DNA of 34,306 bases from Octopus bimaculoides (Eukaryota). Below are positions 4,401 to 33,789 of the stretch, piece by piece. Each line of letters starts with the position of its first letter. The stretch's first letter is position 1. The stretch is taken from NCBI RefSeq assembly GCF_001194135.2, contig NC_068990.1:83919840-83954145 (forward strand), read 5' to 3'. The notes beneath the pieces are model-generated. The model was not told the DNA's origin and ran no database searches. It saw nothing but the letters and a program-made list of their open reading frames with translations. Made by a program: the position numbers and the translations under genes.

Positions 4401-4417
4401 CACTTACCCCACCGGTC

Positions 4418-4808
4418 GTGGAGGCGCAATGGCCCAGTGGTTAGGGCAGCGGACTCGCGGTCATAGGATCGCGGTTTCGATTCCCAGACCAGGCGTTGTG
4501 AGTGTTTATTGAGCGAAAACACCTAAAGCTCTACGAGGCTCCGGCAGGGGATGCTCGTGAACCCTGCTGTACTCTTTCGCCACAACTTTCTCTCACTCTT
4601 ACTTCCTGTTTCTGTTGTACCTGTAATTCAAAGGGTCAGCCTTGTCACACTGTGTCACGCTGAATATCCCCGAGAACTACGTTAAGGGTACACGTGTCTG
4701 TGGAGTGCTCAGCCACTTGCACGTTAATTTCACGAGCAGGCTGTTCCGTTGATCGGATCAACTGGAACCCTCGACGTCGTAAGCGACGGAGAGCCAACAA
4801 TACAAATG
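4418..4808 (+). mobile_element. tRNA-headed SINE, family 1, full length, 11-bp TSD
   Basis: A box TGGCCCAGTGG, B box GGTTTCGATTCC; TSD ccccaccggtc at 4407-4417 and 4809-4819; near-identical copies at 8542 and 33422. Confidence 0.9.
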
Positions 4809-7294: not shown

Positions 7295-7703
7295 TACTCT
7301 CTTTTACTCTTTTACCGGTTTCAGTCATTTGACTGCGGCCATGCTGGAGCACCGCCTTTAGTCGAGCAAATCGACCCCGGGACTTATTTTTTGTAAGCCT
7401 AGTACTTATTCTATCGGTCTCTTTTGCCGAACCACTAAGTGACGGGGACATAAACACACCAGCATCGGTTGTCAAGCAATGCTAGGGTGACAAACACAGA
7501 CACACAAACACATACACATACACACATATATATATATACATATATACGACGGGCTTCTTTCAGTTTCCGTCTACCAAATCCACTCACAAGGCTTTGGTCG
7601 GCCCGAGGCTATAGTAGAAGACACTTGCCCAAGGTGCCACGCAGTGGGACTGAAACCGGAACTATGTGGCTGGTAAGCAAGCTACTTACCACACAGCCAC
7701 TCC
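7295..7703 (-). mobile_element. tRNA-headed SINE, family 2
   Basis: Reverse complement starts ggagtggctgtgtggtaagtagc, followed by ggcaccttgggcaagtgtc core; further copies at 21076 and 29525. Confidence 0.85.
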
Positions 7704-8325: not shown

Positions 8326-8397
8326 AAACCTTGGTTATAATGAAATAATAGATATTGAAAACGGTAGCTTCAAAAACCTCGACAAATTAGAGGAGCT
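8326..8397 (+). CDS. LRR exon 6, type A (72 nt): NLGYNEIIDIENGSFKNLDKLEEL
   Basis: tttcag acceptor, gtaagt donor; paralogous to 10970 and 13987. Confidence 0.92.
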
Positions 8398-8541
8398 GTA
8401 AGTTGAATCAAACTTGTTGTATATAAGTATGTATTGTATATATGTACAGTAAATTCCTTCGTATTCAATACCAATGGGCCATGCGAGTTGCTGAATAACT
8501 GAATTTTCCAATCTGATCATCACTTATTAGATGGTCCAAAG

Positions 8542-8931
8542 TGGAGGCGCAATGGCCCAGTAGTTAGGGCAGCGGACTCGCGGTCATAGGATCGTGGTTT
8601 CGATTCCCAGACCGGGTGTTGTGAGTGTTTATTGAGCGAAAACACCTAAAGCTCCACGAGGCTCCGGCAGGGGATGGTGGCGAACCCTGCTGTACTCTTC
8701 CACCACAACTTTCTCTCACTCTTACTTCCTGTTTCTGTTGTGCCTGTAATTCAAAGGGTCAGCCTTGTCACACTGTGTCATGCAGAATATCCCCGAGAAC
8801 TACGTTAAGGGTACACGTGTCTGTGGAGTGCTCAGCCACTTGCACGTTAATTTCACGAGCAGGCTGTTCCGTTGATCGGATCAACTGGAAACCTCGATGT
8901 CGTAAGCGACGGAGTGCCAACAAACAAACAA
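8542..8931 (+). mobile_element. tRNA-headed SINE, family 1, full length, 13-bp TSD
   Basis: TSD agatggtccaaag at 8529-8541 and 8932-8944; (caaa)n tail; empty sites in paralogous introns. Confidence 0.93.
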
Positions 8932-9167
8932 AGATGGTCCAAAGCACCTTACAAAACTCAAAACTTTATATATCCATCGGGATTATCAGTAATATTTTGA
9001 ACATAGTAGAAAGGAGAGAAATGGGAGAAAATATAAGTATAATTTGCGTAAAGAACAAGTTTTATTAATCTTATGAAATACAGGTATCTACAGTAAATGC
9101 TGTAAAATAAAATACTGTATTTTGAGAAGCAACACTCTATTTTAAATACAGTACGAATACTTCATTT

Positions 9168-9300
9168 AATCAAGATACCCTTGGCCTGAAGAGTACCATG
9201 TGGTATACACCTTGCTTGGAGATTTACCACTTCCGAGTTCCCACTCGCTATGAAACATATGCAGCCTGGGTTTTATCCATTCCATTCCTGAACGCTTAGA
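9168..9300 (+). mobile_element. Intronic repeat with degenerate type I hammerhead core (Penelope-like pLTR?), copy 1
   Basis: CTGAAGA at 9186-9192, GAAAC at 9252-9256, followed by ATATGCA-GCC. Confidence 0.5.
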
Positions 9301-9769
9301 TTTTCATTCAGATATCTGGCAACCATGGCTGCCAGCGGTGAAATATAAAATAATTCTTTACAGCTTCTCGTACTTCGATTGGAAAAAAAAAATCCACACC
9401 TTCCACCCCAGTAAACCACCATTGTCCTTGATGATTGTGTTTTGTTTTATCTTATACGGATTGTTTCAAGTTCACTTACTTTCTGTACCTCGGTCCTTGG
9501 GCCCTACATTTGTCTATCTACCTGACTATCTATCTAATTATTTCTCTATCTATACATGTGTGTGTGTGTATATGCATATATTTATGTACGTAAGCATGTA
9601 TGCATGAAAATACAACACACACATACATATATACACATTCATAAAAATATACATATTCATACTAACGTATACATACACAGGAACTTCTTTCATCCCATAT
9701 GGGTAAGTGAACGACGAACAACCGGTGCATTTCAATTCCGTTTGTTACATATACCCTTACATATTTCAG

Positions 9770-9841
9770 AGACCTGAGAGGCAATGGAATTAAGAACAAC
9801 GGAAATGGTTCTTGGGAACAACTTCGTAATTTAAAGAAATT
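9770..9841 (+). CDS. LRR exon 7, type B (72 nt): DLRGNGIKNNGNGSWEQLRNLKKL
   Basis: tttcag acceptor, gtaagt donor; paralogous to 11524, 13362 and 14924. Confidence 0.88.
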
Positions 9842-10018
9842 GTAAGTTGGGTGTATTTTCCTTGTGACTAAGTTTATTAGATTTTATATTTCTACAAACA
9901 TACGCACCTATACATATATCTTTATGTCATTATTCAGTTCAAAATTTCTTACCAATAGAGAAAGAGTTTGTTTCTACCCGAAATCCAAGGCTTGTGTGTA
10001 TGCATGTTTTGTATGCAT

Positions 10019-10066
<48 letters not shown>

Positions 10067-10693
10067 NNNNNNNNNNNNNNNNNNNNNNNNNNNNNNNNNN
10101 NNNNNNNNNNNNNNNNNNNNNNNNNNNNNNNNNNNNNNNNNNNNNNNNNNNNNNNNNNNNNNNNNNNNNNNNNNNNNNNNNNNNNNNNNNNNNNNNNNNN
10201 NNNNNNNNNNNNNNNNNNNNNNNNNNNNNNNNNNNNNNNNNNNNNNNNNNNNNNNNNNNNNNNNNNNNNNNNNNNNNNNNNNNNNNNNNNNNNNNNNNNN
10301 NNNNNNNNNNNNNNNNNNNNNNNNNNNNNNNNNNNNNNNNNNNNNNNNNNNNNNNNNNNNNNNNNNNNNNNNNNNNNNNNNNNNNNNNNNNNNNNNNNNN
10401 NNNNNNNNNNNNNNNNNNNNNNNNNNNNNNNNNNNNNNNNNNNNNNNNNNNNNNNNNNNNNNNNNNNNNNNNNNNNNNNNNNNNNNNNNNNNNNNNNNNN
10501 NNNNNNNNNNNNNNNNNNNNNNNNNNNNNNNNNNNNNNNNNNNNNNNNNNNNNNNNNNNNNNNNNNNNNNNNNNNNNNNNNNNNNNNNNNNNNNNNNNNN
10601 NNNNNNNNNNNNNNNNNNNNNNNNNNNNNNNNNNNNNNNNNNNNNNNNNNNNNNNNNNNNNNNNNNNNNNNNNNNNNNNNNNNNNNNNNNNNN
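10067..10693. other. Assembly gap flanked on both sides by (TA)n
   Basis: N run. Confidence 0.97.
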
Positions 10694-10969
10694 TATATAT
10701 ATATATATATATATATATATGCGTGCATATGTATGTATGATGATAAAGATGCATTTGTGGTGATGGGTGTATGTGTACATATTATATTCTTCTGCTTACA
10801 CATGTTGTTCCTTTATTCTTAGCTTATCTCAGATCTCCGGTTTCCTCTCAGTTATTCCTATTCTATACAACCCACCTTTCCTACCACAATCTCAATAACT
10901 CTTCTTCATACTTTAATGTCCACTAATGATCTGTCGTTTCATTTTATGGTTTGTCTTTTCATTTTTCAG

Positions 10970-11041
10970 AAAACTTGCTAATAATCAAATATCGAATATT
11001 GAAAAAGATAGCTTCAAATACCTTGACAGTTTAGAGGAGCT
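10970..11041 (+). CDS. LRR exon 8, type A (72 nt): KLANNQISNIEKDSFKYLDSLEEL
   Basis: tttcag acceptor, gtaagt donor; LRR consensus. Confidence 0.92.
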
Positions 11042-11523
11042 GTAAGTTGAATCATACTTGTTGTGTATGTGTATGCATTTTATATATATACAGTAAACTC
11101 CCTCATATTCAGCACCAACAGTGTCAGGGAGTTGCTGAATAACTAAATTTTCCAGATATAGGATCACTTATTAAATGGTCCAAAGTACCTTACAAAACTC
11201 ATTAAAATTCTAAATATCTAGTGCGCGGATTCGCCCTTGTATGTCATTGTGACATACAAAATGGAGTGTTGCTTCTCAAAATACAGTATTTTGTTTTACC
11301 ACACTTATTGCATGTACATGTATTTTTAAGATTAGTAAAACTTATTTTTTCTCAAACTATACTTATATACACACACATACATATATACACATTCATAAAA
11401 ATAAACATATTTATATCAATGTATACATACACACGAACTACTTTCATCCCATATACATGAGTGAATGACTAAAAACCGGTGCATTTCAATTGCCTCTGTT
11501 ACATATACTCTTACATATTTCAG

Positions 11524-11595
11524 AGACCTGAGTGGCAACAGAATTACGAACATTGGCAGTGATTCTTGGCAACACCTTCAGAATTTAAAGAAATT
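11524..11595 (+). CDS. LRR exon 9, type B (72 nt): DLSGNRITNIGSDSWQHLQNLKKL
   Basis: tttcag acceptor, gtgagt donor; LRR consensus. Confidence 0.9.
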
Positions 11596-12070
11596 GTGAG
11601 TTGAGTATATTTTTGCCTGTGATTCTATATTTATTAGATTTTATATGTTTCTACGCACATGCACACATAGATATACATATATTTTTATATGACATTATTC
11701 AATTTTATTTCAACATTTCTTGCCAATTGAGAAAGAGCTGGTTTCTAACTTAGATTTAAGACTCATGTGTATGTATGTTTATATGCATGTATATATTTGT
11801 ATATATATGTGCATGGTATGTATGTATGTATGTATGTATGTATGTATGTATGTATGTATGTATGTATGTATATATGTATGTATTAGAAGGTTTGGAGGTG
11901 ATGTATAAGAATTATATATTAGAAAAAATAATAATAAGGTACTCAGATATCTGGATGGTTGTACATTTACAGATTTTTATTAATATGTCACATGTTTTTA
12001 TAAATTAGCGCTTGCATCTATTCTTGTAGATTCTTCAGATTTAATTTTTCTTCAGAGGTGTATATTGCAG

Positions 12071-12171
12071 GCTATTCTTCAGGGTAAGGGTATTTTGATT
12101 CGAATGAAGTTTACATTGTCGTTAGGTGTCCCATGTTAACAAACGAAGGATCCGATCAGAATGCGTAGAGA
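12071..12171 (-). repeat. Truncated inverted copy of the hammerhead-bearing repeat
   Basis: Reverse complement aligns with 12614-12714 at roughly 80% identity by eye. Confidence 0.8.
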
Positions 12172-12613
12172 ACCCAGTTTGAGTGGAGTATATAACTTTG
12201 AAGAGAAATTAGGAATATAAGAAAAGAACAAAGAACAAAAATATGTATCGGGGAGACTTACAAAGACAATATCACATATAGTTTTATACCTTGGTTTGTA
12301 GCCAATTGGAAAAGATCCTGTTTGTAACTTCATTGAAATTTCGACAACACAACAGCTGTGCGTGTATGTCTCTAGTTGCAAGGATTTGGGGTGAATGCCT
12401 GTACAGATCTACATGATTGGTTTTGTGTATGCATTTTATGTATGCATACTCATACGTATACTTGCAGGTCTAGACATGTGTATATTTATTTACATATTAA
12501 AGCTTTAGAAACTATTGTACATTTTTGATAACGTCATTCATTGCTTTATCTATAGTTTTCTAATCAGCATTCCTCGTCCTGTTTTGGATGTTTGAATGAA
12601 CGTATGTATACGC

Positions 12614-12800
12614 TCTCTACGGATTCTGATCGAATACTTCACTTGTTAACATGCGCCTTCTAACGACAATGTAAACTTAATTTAATCAAGATACCCTTAG
12701 CCTGAAGAGTAGTCTATGGTACATACCTTGCTTGGATGTTTACCACTTCTGGGTTCCCACTTACTATGAAACATATGCAGCCCGGGTTTTATCCATTCCA
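12614..12800 (+). mobile_element. Hammerhead-bearing repeat, copy 2
   Basis: CTGAAGA at 12702-12708, stem GTAGT/ACTAT, GAAAC at 12768-12772. Confidence 0.5.
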
Positions 12801-13029
12801 TTCCTTAACTCTTAGATCTTTATTCAGATATCTGGCAACCATGGCTGCCAGCGGTGAAATATAAAATAGTTCTGTTTAGCCTCTCGTACTTCGATTGGAA
12901 AAAAATCCACACCTTTCTGCCCCAGTAAACCACCATAGTTCCTGATGATTGTTTTTTTTTATATATTTATATTTTCTATGCATTGCTTCAAGCTCCCTTT
13001 CACCGTGCCTCTCGATCTTTGGACCTTAC

Positions 13030-13067
<38 letters not shown>

Positions 13068-13361
13068 TTATCTATATAATATATGCGTCTGTGTGTGCGT
13101 GTGTGTGTGTGCGCGCGCGTGCGTGTGTGTGCACGTGTGCGTTAGTGTGTGTGTGTGTGTGCGCGCGCGCATATATTTATGTAAGTGTGCATGTATGTCT
13201 GAAAATATATACACCCACATATACACACATTCATAAAAATATTCATATTCATATTAATGTATACATACACACGAACTACTTTCATCCCATATACATGAGT
13301 GAATGACTAAAAACCGGTGCATTTCAATTGCCTCTGTTACATATACTCTTACATATTTCAG

Positions 13362-13433
13362 AGACCTGAGTCGCACTGGAATTACGAACATTGGCAATGG
13401 TTCTTGGCAACACCTTCAGAATTTAAAGAAATT
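13362..13433 (+). CDS. LRR exon 10, type B (72 nt): DLSRTGITNIGNGSWQHLQNLKKL
   Basis: tttcag acceptor, gtgagt donor; consensus Asn replaced by Thr. Confidence 0.85.
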
Positions 13434-13635
13434 GTGAGTTGAGTATATTTTTGCCTGTGATTCTATATTCATTAGATTTTATATGTTTCTACGCACATGC
13501 ACACATAGATATACATATATTTTTATATGACATTATTCAATTTTATTTCAACATTTCTTGCCAATTGAGAAAGAGCTGGTTTCTAACCTAGATTCAAGGC
13601 TCATGTATATGTAGCTTTATATGCATGTATATATT

Positions 13636-13720
<85 letters not shown>

Positions 13721-13986
13721 TTACAGGCGTGTATATGTGTGTATGATGAGAAAGATATCGTTGTATTGATGGGTGTAGGTGTATATATTATATTCTACTT
13801 ATATATGTGCATATATTCTTCTACTTCATTCATTTTTAGCTTTGCTCAGGTCTTCAGACACTTCTCAATTATTCCTTCTCTATACAACCCACCTTTCCTA
13901 CCACAATCTCAGTAACTCTTCTTCACACATTAATGTTCTTTAATGATCTGTCGTTTTATTTTATTGTTTGTCTTTTTATTTTTCAG

Positions 13987-14058
13987 AATCCTTACTGATA
14001 ATGAAATATCGAATATTGAAGAAGGTCAATTCGAAAACCTCGACAGTCTAGAGGAACT
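13987..14058 (+). CDS. LRR exon 11, type A (72 nt): ILTDNEISNIEEGQFENLDSLEEL
   Basis: tttcag acceptor, gtaagt donor; LRR consensus. Confidence 0.92.
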
Positions 14059-14519
14059 GTAAGTTGAATCAGACTTGTATATATATATACATGCATGGAA
14101 TATATGTACAGTACTCTCCCTCATATTCAACACCAATGGGTCCTGAGTGTTACTGAAAAACGGAATTTTCCAGATATCTGATCATCACTGATCAAATGGT
14201 CCAAAGTTCTATATAAAACTCATTAGAACTCTATATATCCAGTGGGCGCATTCTTCTTTGTATGTAATTGTGACATACAAAATGGAGTGTTGCTTCTCAA
14301 AACGTAATATTTATTTTTCCTTCATTTACTGTATATGCCTGTATTTTATAAGATTAATGAAACTTGTTCTTTATGCAAATTATGCTTATATTTTCCGCTA
14401 TTTCCCTATTTCCCGCTATTTCAAAATATTACTGATAGTACCGATGGCTATATAGAGTTTTAATTAGTTTTCTAAGCTGCTTTGAGCCATTTGATAAGTG
14501 ATGATGAAATATATGGAGC

Positions 14520-14700
14520 AGATAAGATCCGGGCTACGTACGTTTCATAGTGAGCGGAACCCCGGAAGTGGTAGACATCCAAACAAGGTGTATACCACAG
14601 GTTACTCTTCGGGCCAAAGATACCTTGATTAAATGAAGCTTATATTGTCGTTAAGAGGCAAAACACGGAAGATCCGATCTGAATGCGAAGAGAACACAGT
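14520..14700 (-). mobile_element. Hammerhead-bearing repeat, copy 3 (inverted)
   Basis: Reverse complement reads GGC-CCGAAGA...GAAAC-GTAC-GTA-GCCC (core 14535-14612). Confidence 0.5.
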
Positions 14701-14923
14701 TTAGAAGATGTGAGAGGGTGCACATACATTAAAAGGTATTATGCATATATATATATGAAAATATACAAACACACATACATATATACACACATTCATAAAA
14801 ATAAACATATTTATATCAATGTATACATACACACGAACTACTTTCATCCCATATACATGAGTGAATGACTAAAAACCGGTGCATTTCAATTGCCTCTGTT
14901 ACATATACTCTTACATATTTCAG

Positions 14924-14995
14924 AGACCTGAGTGGCAACAGAATTACGAACATCAGCGATGGTTCTTGGCAACACCTTCAGAATTTAAAGAAATT
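14924..14995 (+). CDS. LRR exon 12, type B (72 nt): DLSGNRITNISDGSWQHLQNLKKL
   Basis: tttcag acceptor, gtgagt donor; LRR consensus. Confidence 0.9.
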
Positions 14996-15656
14996 GTGAG
15001 TTGAGTATATTTTTGCCTGTGATTCTATATTTATTAGATTTTATATGTTTCTACGCACATGCACATATAGATATACATATATTTTTATATGACATTATTC
15101 AGTTTTATTTCAACATTTCTTGCCAATTGAGAAAGAGCTGGTTTCTAACCTAGATTTAAGACTCATGTGTATGTATGTTTGTATGCATGTATATATGTTT
15201 GTTTGTATATATAGTTGAAATTCACAGAAAAACAACAAATGGCTCGAGAAGGTGAGAAAGTTTCTTTCATCATCATGATATTTGAAACTGATCAGATTGA
15301 AAATAGTGAAAGTGGCCCAATAATTACAGTTATAAACTTGAACTTGTAATCTGCATAGAGTAACTGTTGATTCCTCAATAGTTCAGCGCAGGTATTCACT
15401 TTTTCGCTAATCGTCAGCTTTATTTTAACACCCGTGGGAAACTGATTTCCACAACTGTATAAGTTTTTCTTCTCAATCCCAAATCACTATGTCAGGTCTA
15501 TTATATATACATTTTATTGAGGTTTTTACTGGTATATTCCATCAGTATTTTTCATTATGAGTGGCTATGGCTTCTACCACACTGTAGGTTCTTGTATGTA
15601 TGTATGTATGTATGTATGGTTGTATGTATGTATGTATGTATGGTTGTATGTGTGTT

Positions 15657-15718
15657 GTGGAGGCGCAATGGCCCAGTGGTTAGGGCAGTGGACTCGCGGT
15701 CATAGGATCGCGGTTTCG
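15657..15718 (+). mobile_element. SINE family 1, 5' head, cut off by gap
   Basis: gtggaggcgcaatggcccagtggttaggg... runs into the N run. Confidence 0.9.
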
Positions 15719-16537
15719 NNNNNNNNNNNNNNNNNNNNNNNNNNNNNNNNNNNNNNNNNNNNNNNNNNNNNNNNNNNNNNNNNNNNNNNNNNNNNNNNNN
15801 NNNNNNNNNNNNNNNNNNNNNNNNNNNNNNNNNNNNNNNNNNNNNNNNNNNNNNNNNNNNNNNNNNNNNNNNNNNNNNNNNNNNNNNNNNNNNNNNNNNN
15901 NNNNNNNNNNNNNNNNNNNNNNNNNNNNNNNNNNNNNNNNNNNNNNNNNNNNNNNNNNNNNNNNNNNNNNNNNNNNNNNNNNNNNNNNNNNNNNNNNNNN
16001 NNNNNNNNNNNNNNNNNNNNNNNNNNNNNNNNNNNNNNNNNNNNNNNNNNNNNNNNNNNNNNNNNNNNNNNNNNNNNNNNNNNNNNNNNNNNNNNNNNNN
16101 NNNNNNNNNNNNNNNNNNNNNNNNNNNNNNNNNNNNNNNNNNNNNNNNNNNNNNNNNNNNNNNNNNNNNNNNNNNNNNNNNNNNNNNNNNNNNNNNNNNN
16201 NNNNNNNNNNNNNNNNNNNNNNNNNNNNNNNNNNNNNNNNNNNNNNNNNNNNNNNNNNNNNNNNNNNNNNNNNNNNNNNNNNNNNNNNNNNNNNNNNNNN
16301 NNNNNNNNNNNNNNNNNNNNNNNNNNNNNNNNNNNNNNNNNNNNNNNNNNNNNNNNNNNNNNNNNNNNNNNNNNNNNNNNNNNNNNNNNNNNNNNNNNNN
16401 NNNNNNNNNNNNNNNNNNNNNNNNNNNNNNNNNNNNNNNNNNNNNNNNNNNNNNNNNNNNNNNNNNNNNNNNNNNNNNNNNNNNNNNNNNNNNNNNNNNN
16501 NNNNNNNNNNNNNNNNNNNNNNNNNNNNNNNNNNNNN
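15719..16537. other. Assembly gap
   Basis: N run. Confidence 0.97.
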
Positions 16538-16635: not shown

Positions 16636-17084
16636 CATACATACATACATACATACATAGAGAGAGAGAGAAAGAGAGTATGCGTGTGCCTATCTAGATT
16701 ATCTAAGATCATGTCATGTAATCATTGAGTTAGACTCCATATGTTCTATTATAATCCAAAACAGTTGCCTGAGTAGAAAATTCCTGCTATTAGGCAGATA
16801 ATCCCATGCTGCAAGTCTGTTGGCTATAATGGTCATGGAATATAAATTAAAGAATAAGACAGGAAAATATAGTGTTAAATTATTTACTGAAATCTTTTTA
16901 ATACGTGTTTCAGTTACAATTAATTCAGTCTAATCTCATGCATATATTGTTAATTATAATGGAAACGCATGTAAATTTGCCATGAATAAATAAACACTAT
17001 TCTTTCCTGAATTGAACTTTATATGTGTGTGCATCTATGGGCACGTAAGTGTGACTGTTTCTCTGTCTGTCTCTCTGTGTGTAT

Positions 17085-18030
17085 GAGTCATCATTATGGA
17101 AGGTTTCACCATTCAAAGAATTTTGCAAACTTCGAAATAAATTGTAATCTGATGGTGTAAGGTCAGGGCTATATGGTGAATGTGACATCACTCTCCAACC
17201 AAGCGTGAATAATTTTTCACAAGTTAGCAAAGGCGTGTGTGAACTAGTGTTGTCATGTTGGAAAACGATTCCTTTACGATTTGCCAATTCTGGCCGTTTT
17301 TCTTTGATTGCTTCCTCCAGTTTTATTAGTTGTTCACAGTAAACATCTGAGTTGATCATTTGGTTCCTTGGAAGTAGCTCAAAATACACAACATCTTTGT
17401 AATCCCACCAAATTGATAGCATAACCTTTTCTGGTGCAATTCAGCTTTCGATGTGGTTTGTGTTGGTTCATTATGTTTAGAGCATGATTGTTTCCGGTTG
17501 ATGCTGTTGTAGACAATCCATTTTTGATCACCAGTGATGACTCGTTTAAAAAAGAGTTCGATTTCATTGCGTTTGAGATGTATATTGCAAATATTGATTC
17601 GTTATTTTAAGTGAATATCTTTTAATTTATGTGGAGCCCAAATATCGAGCTTCTTAACGAGTCCAAGGCATTTTAAGTGATTTTCATTTGTTGTGTGTGA
17701 TACATCTAACCTCTCTGCAATCTCTCTCGCACAAGTATATGACAATCAGGTTCAATTATGGCTTTGATTCGGTCATCATCAACTTCAGAAGGTCGACCAG
17801 AACGTTGGTCATCTTCAGAACGGAATTTTTTAAACTATTTCTGACATGTGTGTTCTGTTAAACAATCAACACATAAAGTTCACATATCTCTGAGTCTCAG
17901 TTTCAGCAACTTTCTTACCTTTACGGAAATAAAAAAGCAAAATATGGTGAAAATTTTGTTCTTTTGCACTCCATCTTAAAATTGACACTGAACTAACAGC
18001 GGTAAACAAAATTACGCGCAATTTGCTTCT
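17085..18030 (-). mobile_element. Mariner (DD34D) transposase remnant; ends approximate
   Basis: ITGDQKWIVY, MLSIWWDYK, FQHDNT, HSPYSPDLTPSDYNLFRSLQNSL; frameshifted. Confidence 0.92.
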
Positions 18031-18675: not shown

Positions 18676-18747
18676 AAATTTGAGGAACAACCAAATCAAA
18701 GAATATCAAGATGGCGCATTTTCATCTCTTTCAAACATAACTGGAAT
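18676..18747 (+). CDS. LRR exon 13 (72 nt): NLRNNQIKEYQDGAFSSLSNITG(I)
   Basis: tttcag acceptor, gtatgt donor; LRR consensus. Confidence 0.9.
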
Positions 18748-19956: not shown

Positions 19957-20210
19957 GTAGGTGAAATCTTCCTTAATTCTGTTGCAATCGTTTCTTCTCT
20001 TTATACGATCTACAGAAATCCACGATGAAAATTCCATATATTTAATATAATTTCCTCTGTTATATATTATCTCTGTAGCAGTTTGCACAACATACTTATC
20101 AATCAAATATGCGAGTTTTTATACTTTACTCCTTGCATTTTACATCAATATTTTACAGATCTTATTTATACTTAGTGTAATTGTTATCTGTATCTCTCTG
20201 GAACTTCACA

Positions 20211-20764
20211 GAAAAAAGGTTCTTCTCTCTATCTGGTGGGATTGCAAAGGAGTAATTCACTTTGAATTGTTACCACCTAATGCAACAATCAATGCTCAAG
20301 TCTACTGTCAGCAATTAGAGCGTTTGAACCAAGCTTTGAAAGAAAAAAAGACTCGCTTTAGTGAATCGAAAAGGAGTGATGTTTCATTAGGACAATGCGC
20401 GACCCCACACTGCAAAGATCACATCACAGAAGATCGAAGACCTTGGTTGGGAAAAAATTCCTCATCCACCTTATTCTCCCGACCTTGCTCCTTCATACTA
20501 CCATTTGTTTCGTAGTTTACAGAATCATTTGGGGGACATAACTTTCGCAAGCCAGGAGGAGGTCGAAACTGATATTTCAGACTTCTTCGCTTTGAAACCA
20601 AAAGAGTTTTACATTGATGGGATTAAAAAACTTGTAAATAGATTGAAGGAAGTCATAGATAATCAGGGAAAGTACATTGATAATTAAATTCCAATTAAAT
20701 ATAACACTTGATCACTTGTTTTCTTTATTCAAAATCCAGACAGAACTTATGGGATGACCTGATA
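20211..20764 (+). mobile_element. 5'-truncated mariner remnant with TIR-like 3' end
   Basis: LSIWWDCKGVIHFELLP, PHPPYSPDLAPSYYHLFRSLQNHL, GIKKLVNRLKEVIDNQGKYID; ends ...cttatgggatgacctgata. Confidence 0.92.
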
Positions 20765-21075: not shown

Positions 21076-21272
21076 TTCTTTTTACCTGTTTCAGTCATTT
21101 GATTGTGGCCATGCTAGAGCACCGCCTTTAGTCGAGCAAATCGACCCCAGGACTTATTGTATCGGTCTCTTTTGCTGAACCGCTAAGTTACAGGGACGTA
21201 AACACACCAGCATCGGTTGTCAAGCGATATTGGGGCGACAAACACAGACACAAACATATACACATACATACA

Positions 21273-21313
<41 letters not shown>

Positions 21314-21475
21314 GACGGGCTTCTTTCAGTTTCCGTCTACCAAATCCACTCACAAGGCTTTGGTCGGCCCGAGGCTATAGTAGAAGACACTTGCCCAAGG
21401 TGCCACGCAGTGGGACTGAACCCGGAACCATGTGGTTCGTTAGCAAGCTACTTACCACCCAGCCACTCCTACGCC
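21076..21475 (-). mobile_element. tRNA-headed SINE, family 2
   Basis: Highly similar to 7295-7703; internal (TA)n. Confidence 0.87.
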
Positions 21476-21610: not shown

Positions 21611-21696
21611 GTCACACGATTAATTATGAGAGAATTCAGTGCCACGTATGTTCGGAGATGAACTGCAGATATCTGACCGACTGCCATGGTATACAG
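21611..21696 (+). CDS. Ly6/uPAR-like domain, first exon (86 nt, phase 1-0): (S)HTINYERIQCHVCSEMNCRYLTDCHGIQ
   Basis: tgtag acceptor, gtaaac donor; CxxC start typical of LU/three-finger folds. Confidence 0.82.
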
Positions 21697-22085: not shown

Positions 22086-22266
22086 CCTAGATGTATGACC
22101 ACAATAGCAATGCACGGTGATTCCAAGGTTGAAAAAACATGCAGCACACGCGAAAATTGCACTGAAACTGAGAGACGGAATGTGTCAAATTGCAATAATT
22201 GGACTAAAGGCAATTCTTGTGTTACTTGTTGCAACACAGGCTTATGTAACGAGAATGTTTTCGAAG
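22086..22266 (+). CDS. Ly6/uPAR-like domain, second exon (181 nt, phase 0-1): PRCMTTIAMHGDSKVEKTCSTRENCTETERRNVSNCNNWTKGNSCVTCCNTGLCNENVFE
   Basis: tgcag acceptor, gtaagt donor; terminal CCxxxxCN motif of LU domains; overlaps ORF 22095-22298. Confidence 0.88.
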
Positions 22267-27987: not shown

Positions 27988-28090
27988 AGTTTTGCAATGA
28001 AAACACAAATGGCAGGTTTCAGTGGCCAGTGACAAAAATAGGAGATACCGCGTACATCTCGTGTCTTGCACATATAGCAACAAGAGACTG
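27988..28090 (+). CDS. HormR domain exon 1 (103 nt, phase 1-2): (K)FCNENTNGRFQWPVTKIGDTAYISCLAHIATRD(C)
   Basis: attcag acceptor, gttcgt donor (weaker); C...WPxTxxG...C...ATRxC HormR signature. Confidence 0.88.
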
Positions 28091-28350: not shown

Positions 28351-28814
28351 TTAATAAGAATTATTCTATGAAACAATCTTGCATTCTTAAATTATTAAAT
28401 AATTATTATTAAGTATTAAATTATGATAGAAGGGAATGTTTCTATATTCATCTGATGTAACACAGGTATTTTACTATTACACAGCATATAACCTAAGATA
28501 TTTTATGCACACATAGTTGATCTTCCGGTGAAAGTTCTTGAGGGTTCAGTCACGAGCAAATTACGGTCTGCGGGACTAACGAAAAAGTACTTGATGATAC
28601 ACGTGTACATGTAAATCCTCACTATCATTTATCTTTGTATTTCTCTAAATGTTTTAAGGCTTTTGTGAGGAATAAAGCAATTATTACTTCTTGTTTCGAT
28701 AGATTACGGATGAGATCGACGTAATTTTTTTTTATATTCATTTTAAGTTGATGAAATAAGATTGACCAATATCATTTTCACCTGATTTTATTTTGTTTTG
28801 CTTTGGCTTTTTAG

Positions 28815-28966
28815 TGTTCAAGGAACGGCGGCTACCACGTGTCTTAATTTGCCCAAACAATCACCTTTTACTGGTGTCTGGAAAGATGTAGACATTTCTC
28901 AATGTAATAATACTAAATGGATCATTAAAGAACTCAAGAAAATGCAAGGTCATCGTATCAATGAAT
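28815..28966 (+). CDS. HormR end / GAIN start exon (152 nt, phase 2-1): VQGTAATTCLNLPKQSPFTGVWKDVDISQCNNTKWIIKELKKMQGHRINE
   Basis: ttttag acceptor, gtgagt donor; GxWxxxDxSxC end-of-HormR motif. Confidence 0.88.
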
Positions 28967-28999
28967 GTGAGTGACCAGTCAATTGTTTCCGACACCATT

Positions 29000-29225: not shown

Positions 29226-29524
29226 CATAATAAAAGAGAGTTTGTATGTGTGTGTGTGCGTGTGTGAGTGTGAGCGCGTATGTTCCTTATGGATTCCAGA
29301 ACAGAGTAACCGTTTTTGACGTATGGGGTATCAAAACATTCAGTAAGTTTTTGGTTACGAACTAAACTATATTTTCATTCATTTATTAGCATTACAAAAA
29401 TTTAAGATTATCATTTTTCTTTTAATCACCTATCTTAAACGACATCTTTTACCACCACCACCACCACCACCACCACCACCACAACGACGATGACGTCACA
29501 TTCTCTGTGTTCGCATATATATAT

Positions 29525-29759
29525 ATATACACATATATACGACGGGCTTCTTTCAGTTTCCATCTACCAAATCCACGCACAAGGCTTTGGTCGGCCCGAG
29601 GCTATAGTAGAAGANNNNNNNNNNAAATCCACGCACAAGGCTTTGGTCGGCCCGAGGCTATAGTAGAAGACACTTGCCCAAGGTGCTACGCAGTGGGACT
29701 GAACCCGAAACCATGTGGTTGGTAATGCAAGCTACTTACCACACAGCCACTCCTACGCC
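29525..29759 (-). mobile_element. SINE family 2, 5' half, with 10-N gap and overlapping duplicated sequence
   Basis: Matches 7545-7703; aaatccacgcacaagg... repeated across the N run (scaffolding overlap). Confidence 0.85.
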
Positions 29760-30120: not shown

Positions 30121-30352
30121 GTAATATTAAAGATTTAACCAGACAACTGTTAAATATTTCCCAGAAATCAGTTTATTTCAAAGAAATCGATGTTGTCCTG
30201 GCTGTAGCTAATTATGAGAAGATAGTGCCATGTATATCGAATGTGAGTGCCAATGCAATAAAGGATGATATCCTTTCTATCATCAACAATATCATAAACA
30301 CACCAGAGAAGATTTTGATTGGAGCAGAAAAATCCAACAGAAGTGTCAGCAG
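30121..30352 (+). CDS. GAIN subdomain A exon (232 nt, phase 1-2): (C)NIKDLTRQLLNISQKSVYFKEIDVVLAVANYEKIVPCISNVSANAIKDDILSIINNIINTPEKILIGAEKSNRSVS(R)
   Basis: ttgcag acceptor, gtaaaa donor; amphipathic helical pattern after HormR as in ADGRG-like GAIN domains. Confidence 0.85.
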
Positions 30353-30393
30353 GTAAAACCTAAATCACATTTGCTGCTATTGTACTAATGTAA

Positions 30394-33421: not shown

Positions 33422-33789
33422 GTGGAGGCGCAATGGCCCAGTGGTTAGAGCAGCAGACTCGCGGTCATAAGATCACGGTGAGCGTTTATTGAGCGAAAAA
33501 CACCAAAAAGCTCCACGAGGCTCCGGCAGGGGATGGTGGCGAACCTTGCTGTACTCTTTCACCACAACTTTCTCTCACTCTTACTTCCTGTTTCTGTTGT
33601 GCCTGTAATTCAAAGGGTCAGCCTTGTCACACTGTGTCACGTTGAATCTCCCCGAGAACTACGTTAAGGGTACACGTGTCTGTGGAATGCTCAGCCACTT
33701 GCACGTTAATTTCACGAGCAGGCTGTTCCGTTGATCGGATCAACTGGAACCCTCGACGTCGTAAGTGACGGAGTGCCAACAACAACAAC
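33422..33789 (+). mobile_element. tRNA-headed SINE, family 1, B box deleted, 12-bp TSD
   Basis: TSD aatgtactgtta at 33410-33421 and 33790-33801; (aac)n tail. Confidence 0.92.

Follow-up and report, generated by a model that had tools for sequence, protein, structure and literature searches.

Why should the exons of a repeat array differ more from one another than the introns that surround them? The question is raised by an array of leucine-rich repeat (LRR) exons in a 34,306-nt stretch of Octopus bimaculoides DNA (RefSeq assembly GCF_001194135.2, contig NC_068990.1, positions 83,919,840 to 83,954,145 of the forward strand), referred to here as the window and numbered from its first letter. 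Cluster look-ups placed the array in a gene annotated as 'adhesion G protein-coupled receptor A3[-like]' (XP_014773211.1, 1204 aa). The original prediction, made from the letters alone, held that the youngest LRR exons diverge faster than their introns, almost only by amino-acid replacement, and offered diversifying selection on a recognition surface as the cause or, alternatively, intron-biased gene conversion with the exon differences retained by selection. Our analysis favours the alternative. We consider the best explanation, with a probability of roughly 65 %, to be conversion around three exons (B1, B2 and B3) with an exon patch of ~30 nt escaping homogenization.

The exon–intron contrast in three LRR cassettes

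The array lies on the + strand. Its exons are 72 nt long, have AG/GT borders and share phase 1, and each encodes one 24-residue LRR (consensus LxxLxLxxNxL). The spliced 263-aa product of the array matched Pfam LRR_8 (E=1.1e-103), an AlphaFold2 model of the spliced array (pLDDT 87) had a short strand at LRR positions 3–5 of each repeat, and the nearest PDB structures were generic relatives (TLR13, LGR4, LRRC15 and TLR3). From 8326 on, exons of an A type (..N.IS.IE...F..LD.LEEL) and of a B type (DL..N.I.NI....W..L.NLKKL) alternate. We refer to exon 7 as B0, exon 8 as A1, exon 9 as B1, exon 10 as B2 and exon 12 as B3. The features that carry the contrast are the following, where P0121, P0151 and P0152 denote the annotated isoforms with B1 only, all cassettes and B3 only, respectively.

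9770-9841, + strand: exon 7 (B0), an older B-type exon ~81 % identical to the other B exons, serving as the in-window outgroup
11524-11595, + strand: exon 9 (B1), 72-nt phase-1 LRR exon with AG/GT borders and an open frame, encoding DLSGNRITNIGSDSWQHLQNLKK(L); in annotated P0151 and P0121
13362-13433, + strand: exon 10 (B2), encoding DLSRTGITNIGNGSWQHLQNLKK(L); in annotated P0151 only
14924-14995, + strand: exon 12 (B3), encoding DLSGNRITNISDGSWQHLQNLKK(L); in annotated P0151 and P0152
11534-11562, + strand: variable island of B1 (exon positions 11-39), with counterparts at 13372-13400 (B2) and 14934-14962 (B3); holds all 9 variable sites of the exon

The three cassettes and the older B0 were aligned with MAFFT, and the hand counts on which the original prediction rested were reproduced. 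B1 and B2 differ at 6 of 72 exon sites (positions 11, 15, 16, 17, 36 and 39), which fall in five codons, every one of them changing the residue (G/R, N/T, R/G, S/N, D/G), against 0 of 106 sites immediately upstream and 1 of 154 immediately downstream (+37). Their outer flanks are less identical: five mismatches fall at -107 to -138 and another six at +155 to +182. B1 and B3 differ at 5 of 72 exon sites (31, 32, 35, 36 and 39), one of them synonymous (ATT/ATC), against 4 of 322 flank sites (-138, +71, +107 and +155). Across the three copies the exon differences are tightly grouped, with 4 in 7 nt and 5 in 9 nt, and identical stretches of 116-117 nt are common to all three. All changes were indeed confined to the SGNR..IGSD half of the exon, at positions 11-39; positions 40-72 (SWQHLQNLKK) are invariant in B1, B2 and B3. 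The 3' 33 nt of the B exon (window 11563-11595 and equivalents; TCTTGGCAACACCTTCAGAATTTAAAGAAATT...) are moreover the same in an exon of Octopus vulgaris (Bb, at 28783-28815 of its locus), synonymous sites included, against a neutral divergence of 10-14 %. The identity suggests that constraint acts on more than the protein, for example on splicing signals, or that conversion was repeated.

The formal test that had been proposed, exon against intron, gave an exon excess among these three cassettes, and its strength varies with the choice of flank. With the whole homologous flank (-138 to +184), one-sided Fisher tests returned p=0.089 for exon 9 vs 10, 0.012 for 9 vs 12 and 0.04 for 10 vs 12; three-way variable sites numbered 9/72 in the exon and 14/322 in the flanks (p=0.013). 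When only the core flanks (-106 to +154) were used, the latter fell to 3/260 (p=9e-5). A scan statistic for at least 9 of the 23 variable sites falling in any 29-nt window gave p=6e-4. The near-absence of silent changes carries no information alone, because non-synonymous sites outnumber synonymous sites by ~4:1 and random mutation would give about the same counts; by the Nei–Gojobori method the B1/B2/B3 pairs have 1-2 synonymous (Sd) and 4-5 non-synonymous (Nd) differences, and a ratio of non-synonymous to synonymous rates (dN/dS, or omega) of 0.6-1.3.

The contrast is not peculiar to the short-read assembly of this species, because it is also present in the O. vulgaris locus, which was examined as 100 kb of gap-free sequence with the exon order B0, A1, Ba, A1', Bb, A', Bc, A'' (prefixed Ovu below, as Obi marks O. 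bimaculoides). Here, Ovu_B0 and Ovu_Bb differ at 17/72 exon sites vs 10/178 sites of the downstream intron (p=0.002). Over seven cassettes from both species (Obi_B0 excluded), 18 of the 30 sites at exon positions 10-39 are variable (60 %) vs 23 % of flank sites (p=7e-5). A further B cassette, at 37896-38054 of the O. vulgaris locus, is represented by its upstream flank, which stops exactly at the expected 3' splice site and exon start, the exon being deleted. Its synteny with window 15310-15658 identifies this cassette as the positional equivalent of B3 in O. bimaculoides.

Age of the duplication and homogenization of the B cassettes

Comparison of the window with itself revealed a repeating unit of three exons, B0-A1-B1 followed by B2-A2-B3, in which the upstream flank of B2 matches that of B0 and the surroundings of A2 match those of A1. 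The units, the A exon and the homogenized segments are located as follows.

9159-12660, + strand: old duplication unit 1 (B0-A1-B1), by self-BLAST; includes the assembly gap 10067-10693
12661-15718, + strand: old duplication unit 2 (B2-A2-B3), by self-BLAST; bounded by the assembly gap 15719-16537
10970-11041, + strand: exon 8 (A1), with A-type partners A0 (8326-8397) and A2 (13987-14058)
11385-11800, + strand: homogenized B1 cassette, from sliding-window identity; partner 14784-15200 (B3), with a B2 core at 13256-13587

Outside the B cassettes, the two units are 80-82 % identical by self-BLAST. Pairs of A exons differ at 19-25 % of exon sites and 15-28 % of flank sites, so exon and flanks have diverged alike and the A exons have not been homogenized. 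The B exons behave in another way. When A1..B1 was compared with A2..B3, sliding identity ran at 0.73-0.85 over ~650 bp, rose to 0.98-1.00 from ~11385/14784 and collapsed at a microsatellite at ~11800/15200, the exon appearing as a dip to 0.92 inside the plateau. The plateau shared by B1 and B2 is shorter, with identity of 1.00 across 11428-11750 and 0.88-0.92 in the exon. Overall, the B1-B3 cassettes of ~330-445 bp are 96-99.6 % identical and have sharp edges. Their variable sites support conflicting groupings, which are spatially clustered: seven sites unite B1 with B3, three (exon position 31, written E31, and flank positions +71 and +107) unite B1 with B2, and one unites B2 with B3; the peripheral sites and E16-17 join B1 to B3. 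Sharp edges together with conflicting site patterns point to gene conversion rather than to young duplicates.

The timing comes from the sister species. Introns of orthologous position in O. bimaculoides and O. vulgaris are 86-92 % identical, with dS of 0.12-0.16. Obi A1 is 86.4 % identical to Ovu A1 and only 80.0 % identical to Obi A2, and Obi B2-A2 is collinear with Ovu Bb-A' at 84.1 %. As the two units (80 %) are further apart than the orthologues (86-92 %), these sequences indicate that the three-exon duplication is older than the split between the species. The flanks of Obi B1, B2 and B3 are 0.4-4 % apart from one another, yet 10-15 % from every O. vulgaris B cassette (85-88 % identity), which indicates that the B1-B3 cassettes were homogenized after speciation, by gene conversion among old paralogues and not by recent duplication. 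The description of these exons as the youngest of the array therefore had to be given up: they belong to a ~20 % diverged duplication that predates the species, and their youthful look stems from concerted evolution. Constraint on the introns, such as splicing elements, was entertained as a reason for their identity within the species and was rejected, as the same flanks diverge between species at the neutral rate of 10-15 %.

The variable patch and the rival explanations

The exon patch was examined for the age of its alleles by aligning eight B exons of the two species. The B exons of O. vulgaris also carry both alleles of four of the nine variable exon sites (E16, E17, E35 and E39), whereas this holds for 0/15 of the flank sites (p=0.012). 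Two old B exon types were apparent, a B0 type (...AAT GGA...AAT/AAC GGT) and a B1 type (...AAC AGA...GAT G[G/A]T). B2 retains the B0-type bases at E16-17 and in codons 12-13 within an otherwise B1-type cassette, which is to be expected because B2 is the positional counterpart of B0 in the second unit. At E31, B3 has kept the ancestral C, and a derived T is common to B1 and B2. Conversion has thus acted on this array, and part of the exon differences is older than it. Minimum-change counts over the eight exons gave Sd of 6.0 on 6.8 synonymous sites and Nd of 19 on 26.2 non-synonymous sites in the patch (omega 0.82). Synonymous change is raised as much as replacement, which fits a region shielded from conversion, and patch divergence among B1-B3 (17-24 %) is at the level of the old paralogues. 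Taken from the alignment, the patch is consistent with a stretch sheltered from conversion rather than one that mutated faster after it. The claim that these exons diverge faster than their introns stands insofar as the exon is more different than its flanks; for the most part, however, it has been homogenized less. Unique new changes number 4/72 in the exon vs 6/326 in the flanks, an excess that is not significant (p=0.087).

A donor for the patch variants was sought elsewhere in the window (at most 4 mismatches in 18 nt) and among the 39 family proteins retrieved, and none was found; among those proteins, W-type LRRs were confined to this gene. A reading of IGSDS vs ISDGS as a codon deletion and insertion was dropped, as simple substitutions are equally parsimonious with B0/B2 as ancestor.

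In protein terms, the variable residues are LRR positions 8-10, in the loop after the concave strand that includes the structural Asn, and 15-17, at the start of the convex side. Position 8 is G, R, D, K or E across the eight B exons. The residues canonically placed on the concave face (positions 3, 5 and 7) do not change from B1 to B3, so the proposed recognition surface is only partly plausible. Between O. bimaculoides and O. vulgaris, nine orthologous LRR exons gave an omega of 0.92, with 0.28 at scaffold positions and 0.93, 0.67 and 2.38 in the non-scaffold classes (pooled ~1). The gene-wide value was ~0.83. By region, omega was 1.23 for the LRRCT and Ly6-like portion, 2.66 for HRM (on only 2.5 synonymous differences), 0.78 for GAIN and 0.44 for 7TM; the LRR, LRRCT/Ly6-like and linker regions lie at 0.92-1.23, and clear constraint is confined to the 7TM. 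The ectodomain thus evolves near the neutral rate between the species (omega ~0.8-1.2). No comparison supported the dN/dS >1 expected of a positively selected recognition surface, although the counts were too small to exclude a few selected sites.

The history we favour would run as follows. A B-A-B block would have been duplicated before the O. bimaculoides/O. vulgaris split to give B0-A1-B1 and B2-A2-B3, now ~20 % diverged. Non-reciprocal exchange, whether gene conversion or unequal recombination, would later have overwritten ~330-445 bp around B1, B2 and B3 within the O. bimaculoides lineage, so that the flanking introns and the 3' half of the exon are now 96-100 % identical. In the 5' half, a patch of ~30 nt would have been spared, holding a mixture of old paralogue differences and a few newer replacements, and would therefore stand out as a peak of divergence within a plateau of identity. 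The most likely cause of the escape would be selection against tracts that make neighbouring repeats identical at the patch residues, to which dense mismatches that block heteroduplex extension may add. It is hard to see how the sequence on either side of a 30-nt patch could be homogenized in three cassettes, and once more in a second species, if no filter had acted. Selection against homogenization is a plausible but unproven reason for the escape; its part, rather than that of chance, in maintaining the island is likewise unproven, and so is any contact of the patch residues with a ligand.

Several points weigh against conversion with a spared patch. For O. bimaculoides, the assembly was built from short reads and contains N gaps, and the numbers are small, with 9 variable sites in the exon and 14-15 in the flanks. 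Ovu_Bb and Ovu_Bc show no exon excess (4/72 vs 16/183). The alleles shared at four transition sites could partly be parallel mutation, and E11, E15, E32 and E36 are unique and derived, which calls for new mutation or for donors that were not seen. Between the species, positional orthologues have not kept the same patch residues; this and the dN/dS of ~1 are a poor fit to simple purifying selection for the identity of each repeat.

Those four unique derived replacements, about 3-fold denser than the 6 unique changes in 326 flank nt, are also the chief argument for diversifying selection, under which replacements would have been driven into a ligand-contact surface faster than neutral change accrued in the introns, after recent duplication or complete homogenization. 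The range of residues at position 8 and the ectodomain-wide omega of 0.8-1.2 agree with this, as does the comparison of B1 with its positional orthologue Ovu_Ba, which differ at 14/72 nt (10/23 residues) vs 9.8 % of the downstream flank. Branch-level accelerated evolution is also reported for an octopus-specific expansion of adhesion G protein-coupled receptors (PMC6408891). We nevertheless regard diversifying selection as unlikely. dN/dS was 0.6-1.3 in every comparison, in the patch synonymous sites vary no less than replacement sites do, four of the nine differences are older than the homogenization, the excess of unique changes is non-significant and the concave positions do not vary among B1-B3. 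In the sense of dN/dS >1 it found no support, and classical positive selection was not shown to be the cause. An account without any selection, in which unconstrained LRR positions happened to be where tracts stopped and mismatches then blocked heteroduplex extension so that divergence sustained itself, appears improbable to us. It is in keeping with omega of ~1 at non-scaffold LRR positions between species and in the patch, with the tight clustering of the differences and with variation of the same positions in the older A exons. The introns, however, are equally unconstrained and yet, in each of the three copies, were homogenized to either side of the patch, the pattern recurs in O. vulgaris B0/Bb, and neutral sites cannot exceed the variability of introns (60 % vs 23 %) unless their divergence was seeded and protected.

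An assembly artefact, in which collapsed or consensus-called intron flanks inflated identity and the multi-difference patch survived as separate paths, is very improbable: a single 5-kb contig without gaps (10694-15718) holds B1, B2 and B3, each with private intron variants, and the gap-free O. vulgaris locus has the same architecture and the same contrast between exon and intron. What invites the suspicion is that the window is identical to GCA_001194135.2 (CM046610.1), so that it has no independent assembly of this species beside it, that N gaps flank the array on either side and that stretches of 116-117 nt are identical in three copies. The conversion reading with a spared patch, in which exon differences were retained, thus remains the one we prefer.

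Known parallels, isoforms and the host receptor

A divergence peak in exon 5 of the opsin genes was reportedly described by Shyue and co-workers in 1994 and by Teshima and Innan in 2008. In the primate red/green (LW/MW) opsin genes, exon 5 is a peak of divergence within introns homogenized by conversion, and a model of selection against conversion has been described for this exon and for RHD/RHCE (reviewed in PMC3924837). Several features of the opsin case were found in the octopus array: the non-coding flanks of paralogues are closer within the species than to orthologues or paralogues of the sister species, tract boundaries are sharp with conflicting phylogenetic signal along the tract, and a short exonic stretch is diverged, part of its differences (four of nine sites) predating the homogenization, unless some are parallel mutations, and its linked synonymous sites having diverged too. 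Unlike the opsins, the octopus paralogues are repeat exons inside one gene and not two genes, and the patch residues are not conserved between species. Conversion between the LRR receptors TLR1 and TLR6 is a second parallel, as these are LRR-encoding tandem paralogues whose divergence is limited by conversion; in the available part of that report, the case concerns genes with single coding exons, without an exon–intron contrast or an intragenic cassette array (PMC2077338).

The comparison with venom genes is less close. The octopus exons share with venom paralogues an exon divergence above that of the introns, whereas their dN/dS is ~1 and their intron identity is explained by conversion. In snake-venom phospholipase A2 (PLA2) and conotoxin genes, accelerated exon evolution with conserved introns is accompanied by dN/dS clearly >1, and synonymous sites are not raised. 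We conclude that concerted evolution with an island of divergence is a known pattern in a new place, the intragenic LRR exon cassettes of an octopus adhesion G protein-coupled receptor, and we found no evidence for a new mechanism. Repeat exons of a draft genome can look young and yet be old paralogues whose similarity is maintained by conversion, and for this reason an exon–intron contrast in a repeat array needs comparison with a sister species before it is ascribed to selection.

The cassettes are also the units in which annotated isoforms differ. Three isoforms of the O. bimaculoides gene are distinguished only by cassette use: A1-B1-L13 (A0A0L8HEX5), A1-B3-L13 (A0A0L8HDD6) and the full A1-B1-B2-A2-B3-L13 (XP_014773211.1), where L13 is the following exon.

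18676-18747, + strand: last LRR exon (L13), NLRNNQIKEYQDGAFSSLSNITG, joined directly to B1 or B3 in the two short annotated isoforms

Whole 24-aa LRRs likewise distinguish the isoforms of Octopus sinensis (1394/1298/1298/1250 aa) and those of O. vulgaris (1387 to 1250 aa). Judged from the annotation, cassette skipping could be real alternative splicing or an artefact of transcripts or gene models in repeats. Clusters of tandemly duplicated alternative exons are known from Dscam1 and similar genes. As there, the octopus exons are tandem, identical in length and phase and different at few residues, and annotated isoforms use one or another; unlike there, A exons are interspersed among the B exons, all B exons are included in the longest isoform and no docking/selector pairing was found. 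A search for inverted repeats in the introns around exons 9 and 10 returned microsatellite and transposon arms only, and no docking or selector candidates. It is conceivable, though we consider it doubtful, that the B cassettes are alternatively used modules, splicing picking B1, B3 or the whole B1-B2-A2-B3 block, conversion keeping the splice-relevant flanks interchangeable and selection keeping the patches different. If so, a single fast-evolving octopus adhesion receptor would present several LRR surfaces, distinguished only at positions 8-10 and 15-17.

O. bimaculoides, O. vulgaris and O. sinensis have unequal numbers of LRR exons. In the latter two, the last LRR is preceded by an additional A-type exon (TLSMNQISNIGESSFKNLVNLEEL) that was not seen in O. 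bimaculoides. The gaps at 10067-10693 and 15719-16537, which border the array beside a fragment of a short interspersed nuclear element (SINE) and a (TA)n tract, could hide an unassembled LRR exon. A 23-residue LRR exon (LLEDNKINNIEGAFKGLVNLRIL, 2104-2172) lies outside the 72-nt exon scan, yet is part of the annotated protein, and explains the exon numbering used in the original prediction.

The annotated protein XP_014773211.1 comprises, in order, the LRR array, LRRCT, a Ly6/uPAR-like cysteine module, an HRM-like domain, GAIN/GPS and 7TM. Membership of the adhesion (class B2) receptors is supported by a GPS motif (CSCNHLTSFAIL) in P0151 with 7TM helices after it, and by PF01825 (GPS) and PF00002 (7tm_2) among the precomputed Pfam matches of P0121. 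The GAIN exon at 30123-30353 is 100 % identical to P0121; as the single query of a full HMMER search it retrieved a 1132-aa protein at 100 % identity and ~30 relatives. The spliced segments 27990-28088 and 28816-28968 matched PF02793 (HRM) at profile positions 3-64 of 66 with E=4.4e-4 and 21 bits, below the 26.2-bit cut-off. ADGRA receptors (GPR124/GPR125) carry LRR-LRRCT, an Ig domain and then HRM-GAIN-7TM. An Ig family is absent from the precomputed Pfam matches of P0121, and the place of this domain is taken by the cysteine-rich Ly6/uPAR-like module (...CVTCCNTGLCN...). The NCBI name 'A3-like' is for this reason a label that does not imply orthology to ADGRA. The module, of three-finger type, lies at window 21613-21696 and 22086-22265, a position between LRRCT and HRM that is unusual for an adhesion receptor; it gave no match in Pfam. 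The longest O. vulgaris isoform (P0283) has two tandem copies of it, at 50074-50253 and 53077-53256 of the O. vulgaris locus.

A full-protein search identified LOC115215701 of O. sinensis and O. vulgaris as the orthologue, with an amino-acid identity of 74 %. The spliced LRR array as a protein query found generic LRR proteins only (identity at most 36 %), the spliced HRM and GAIN exons gave zero matches, an exact look-up of the 44-aa open reading frame spanning exon 9 had no match, and neither did a metagenome scan for the invariant half of the B exon. The family looks like the octopus-specific 'group 3' expansion of Ritschard et al. 2019 (PMC6408891), with which it shares, going by the available text, the kind of receptor (GPS and 7TM, some members with LRRs and one with a Death domain, as in P0126); the LRR exon cassettes, their concerted evolution and the isoforms are features of the present gene that this text does not describe. 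A paralogue on a different O. bimaculoides chromosome (P0126/P0153) has at most 15 LRRs, GAIN/7TM, a long (QSTS)n tail and a putative C-terminal Death domain. A rapidly evolving, lineage-specific LRR adhesion receptor whose cassettes may be alternatively included has thus been identified in cephalopods, and the gene is a reasonable candidate for the study of recognition-surface diversification.

The window as a whole is AT-rich and of eukaryotic character, with many microsatellites and four N gaps. Two SINE-like families of interspersed repeats (~400 bp, copies 84-97 % identical) are present at 4415-4806, 8541-8931, 33478-33788 and 15654-15718, and at 7310-7703, 21080-21469 and 29515-29759. 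One family opens with a tRNA-like head (GGAGGCGCAATGGCCCAGTGGTTAGGG...), although ARAGORN called no tRNA, and the O. vulgaris locus has copies as well. An inverted-repeat pair of ~100 nt (12072-12171 vs 12614-12712), 85-86 % complementary and 442 nt apart, lies in the intron between exons 9 and 10 and is probably an element resembling a miniature inverted-repeat transposable element; its repeat recurs near B0 and upstream of B3 (9160-9277 and 14521-14653). Relics of mariner-type transposases lie in introns at 17000-17600 (- strand) and 20051-20684 (+ strand), with matches to Pfam Transposase_1 at E=5e-21 and 6e-23.

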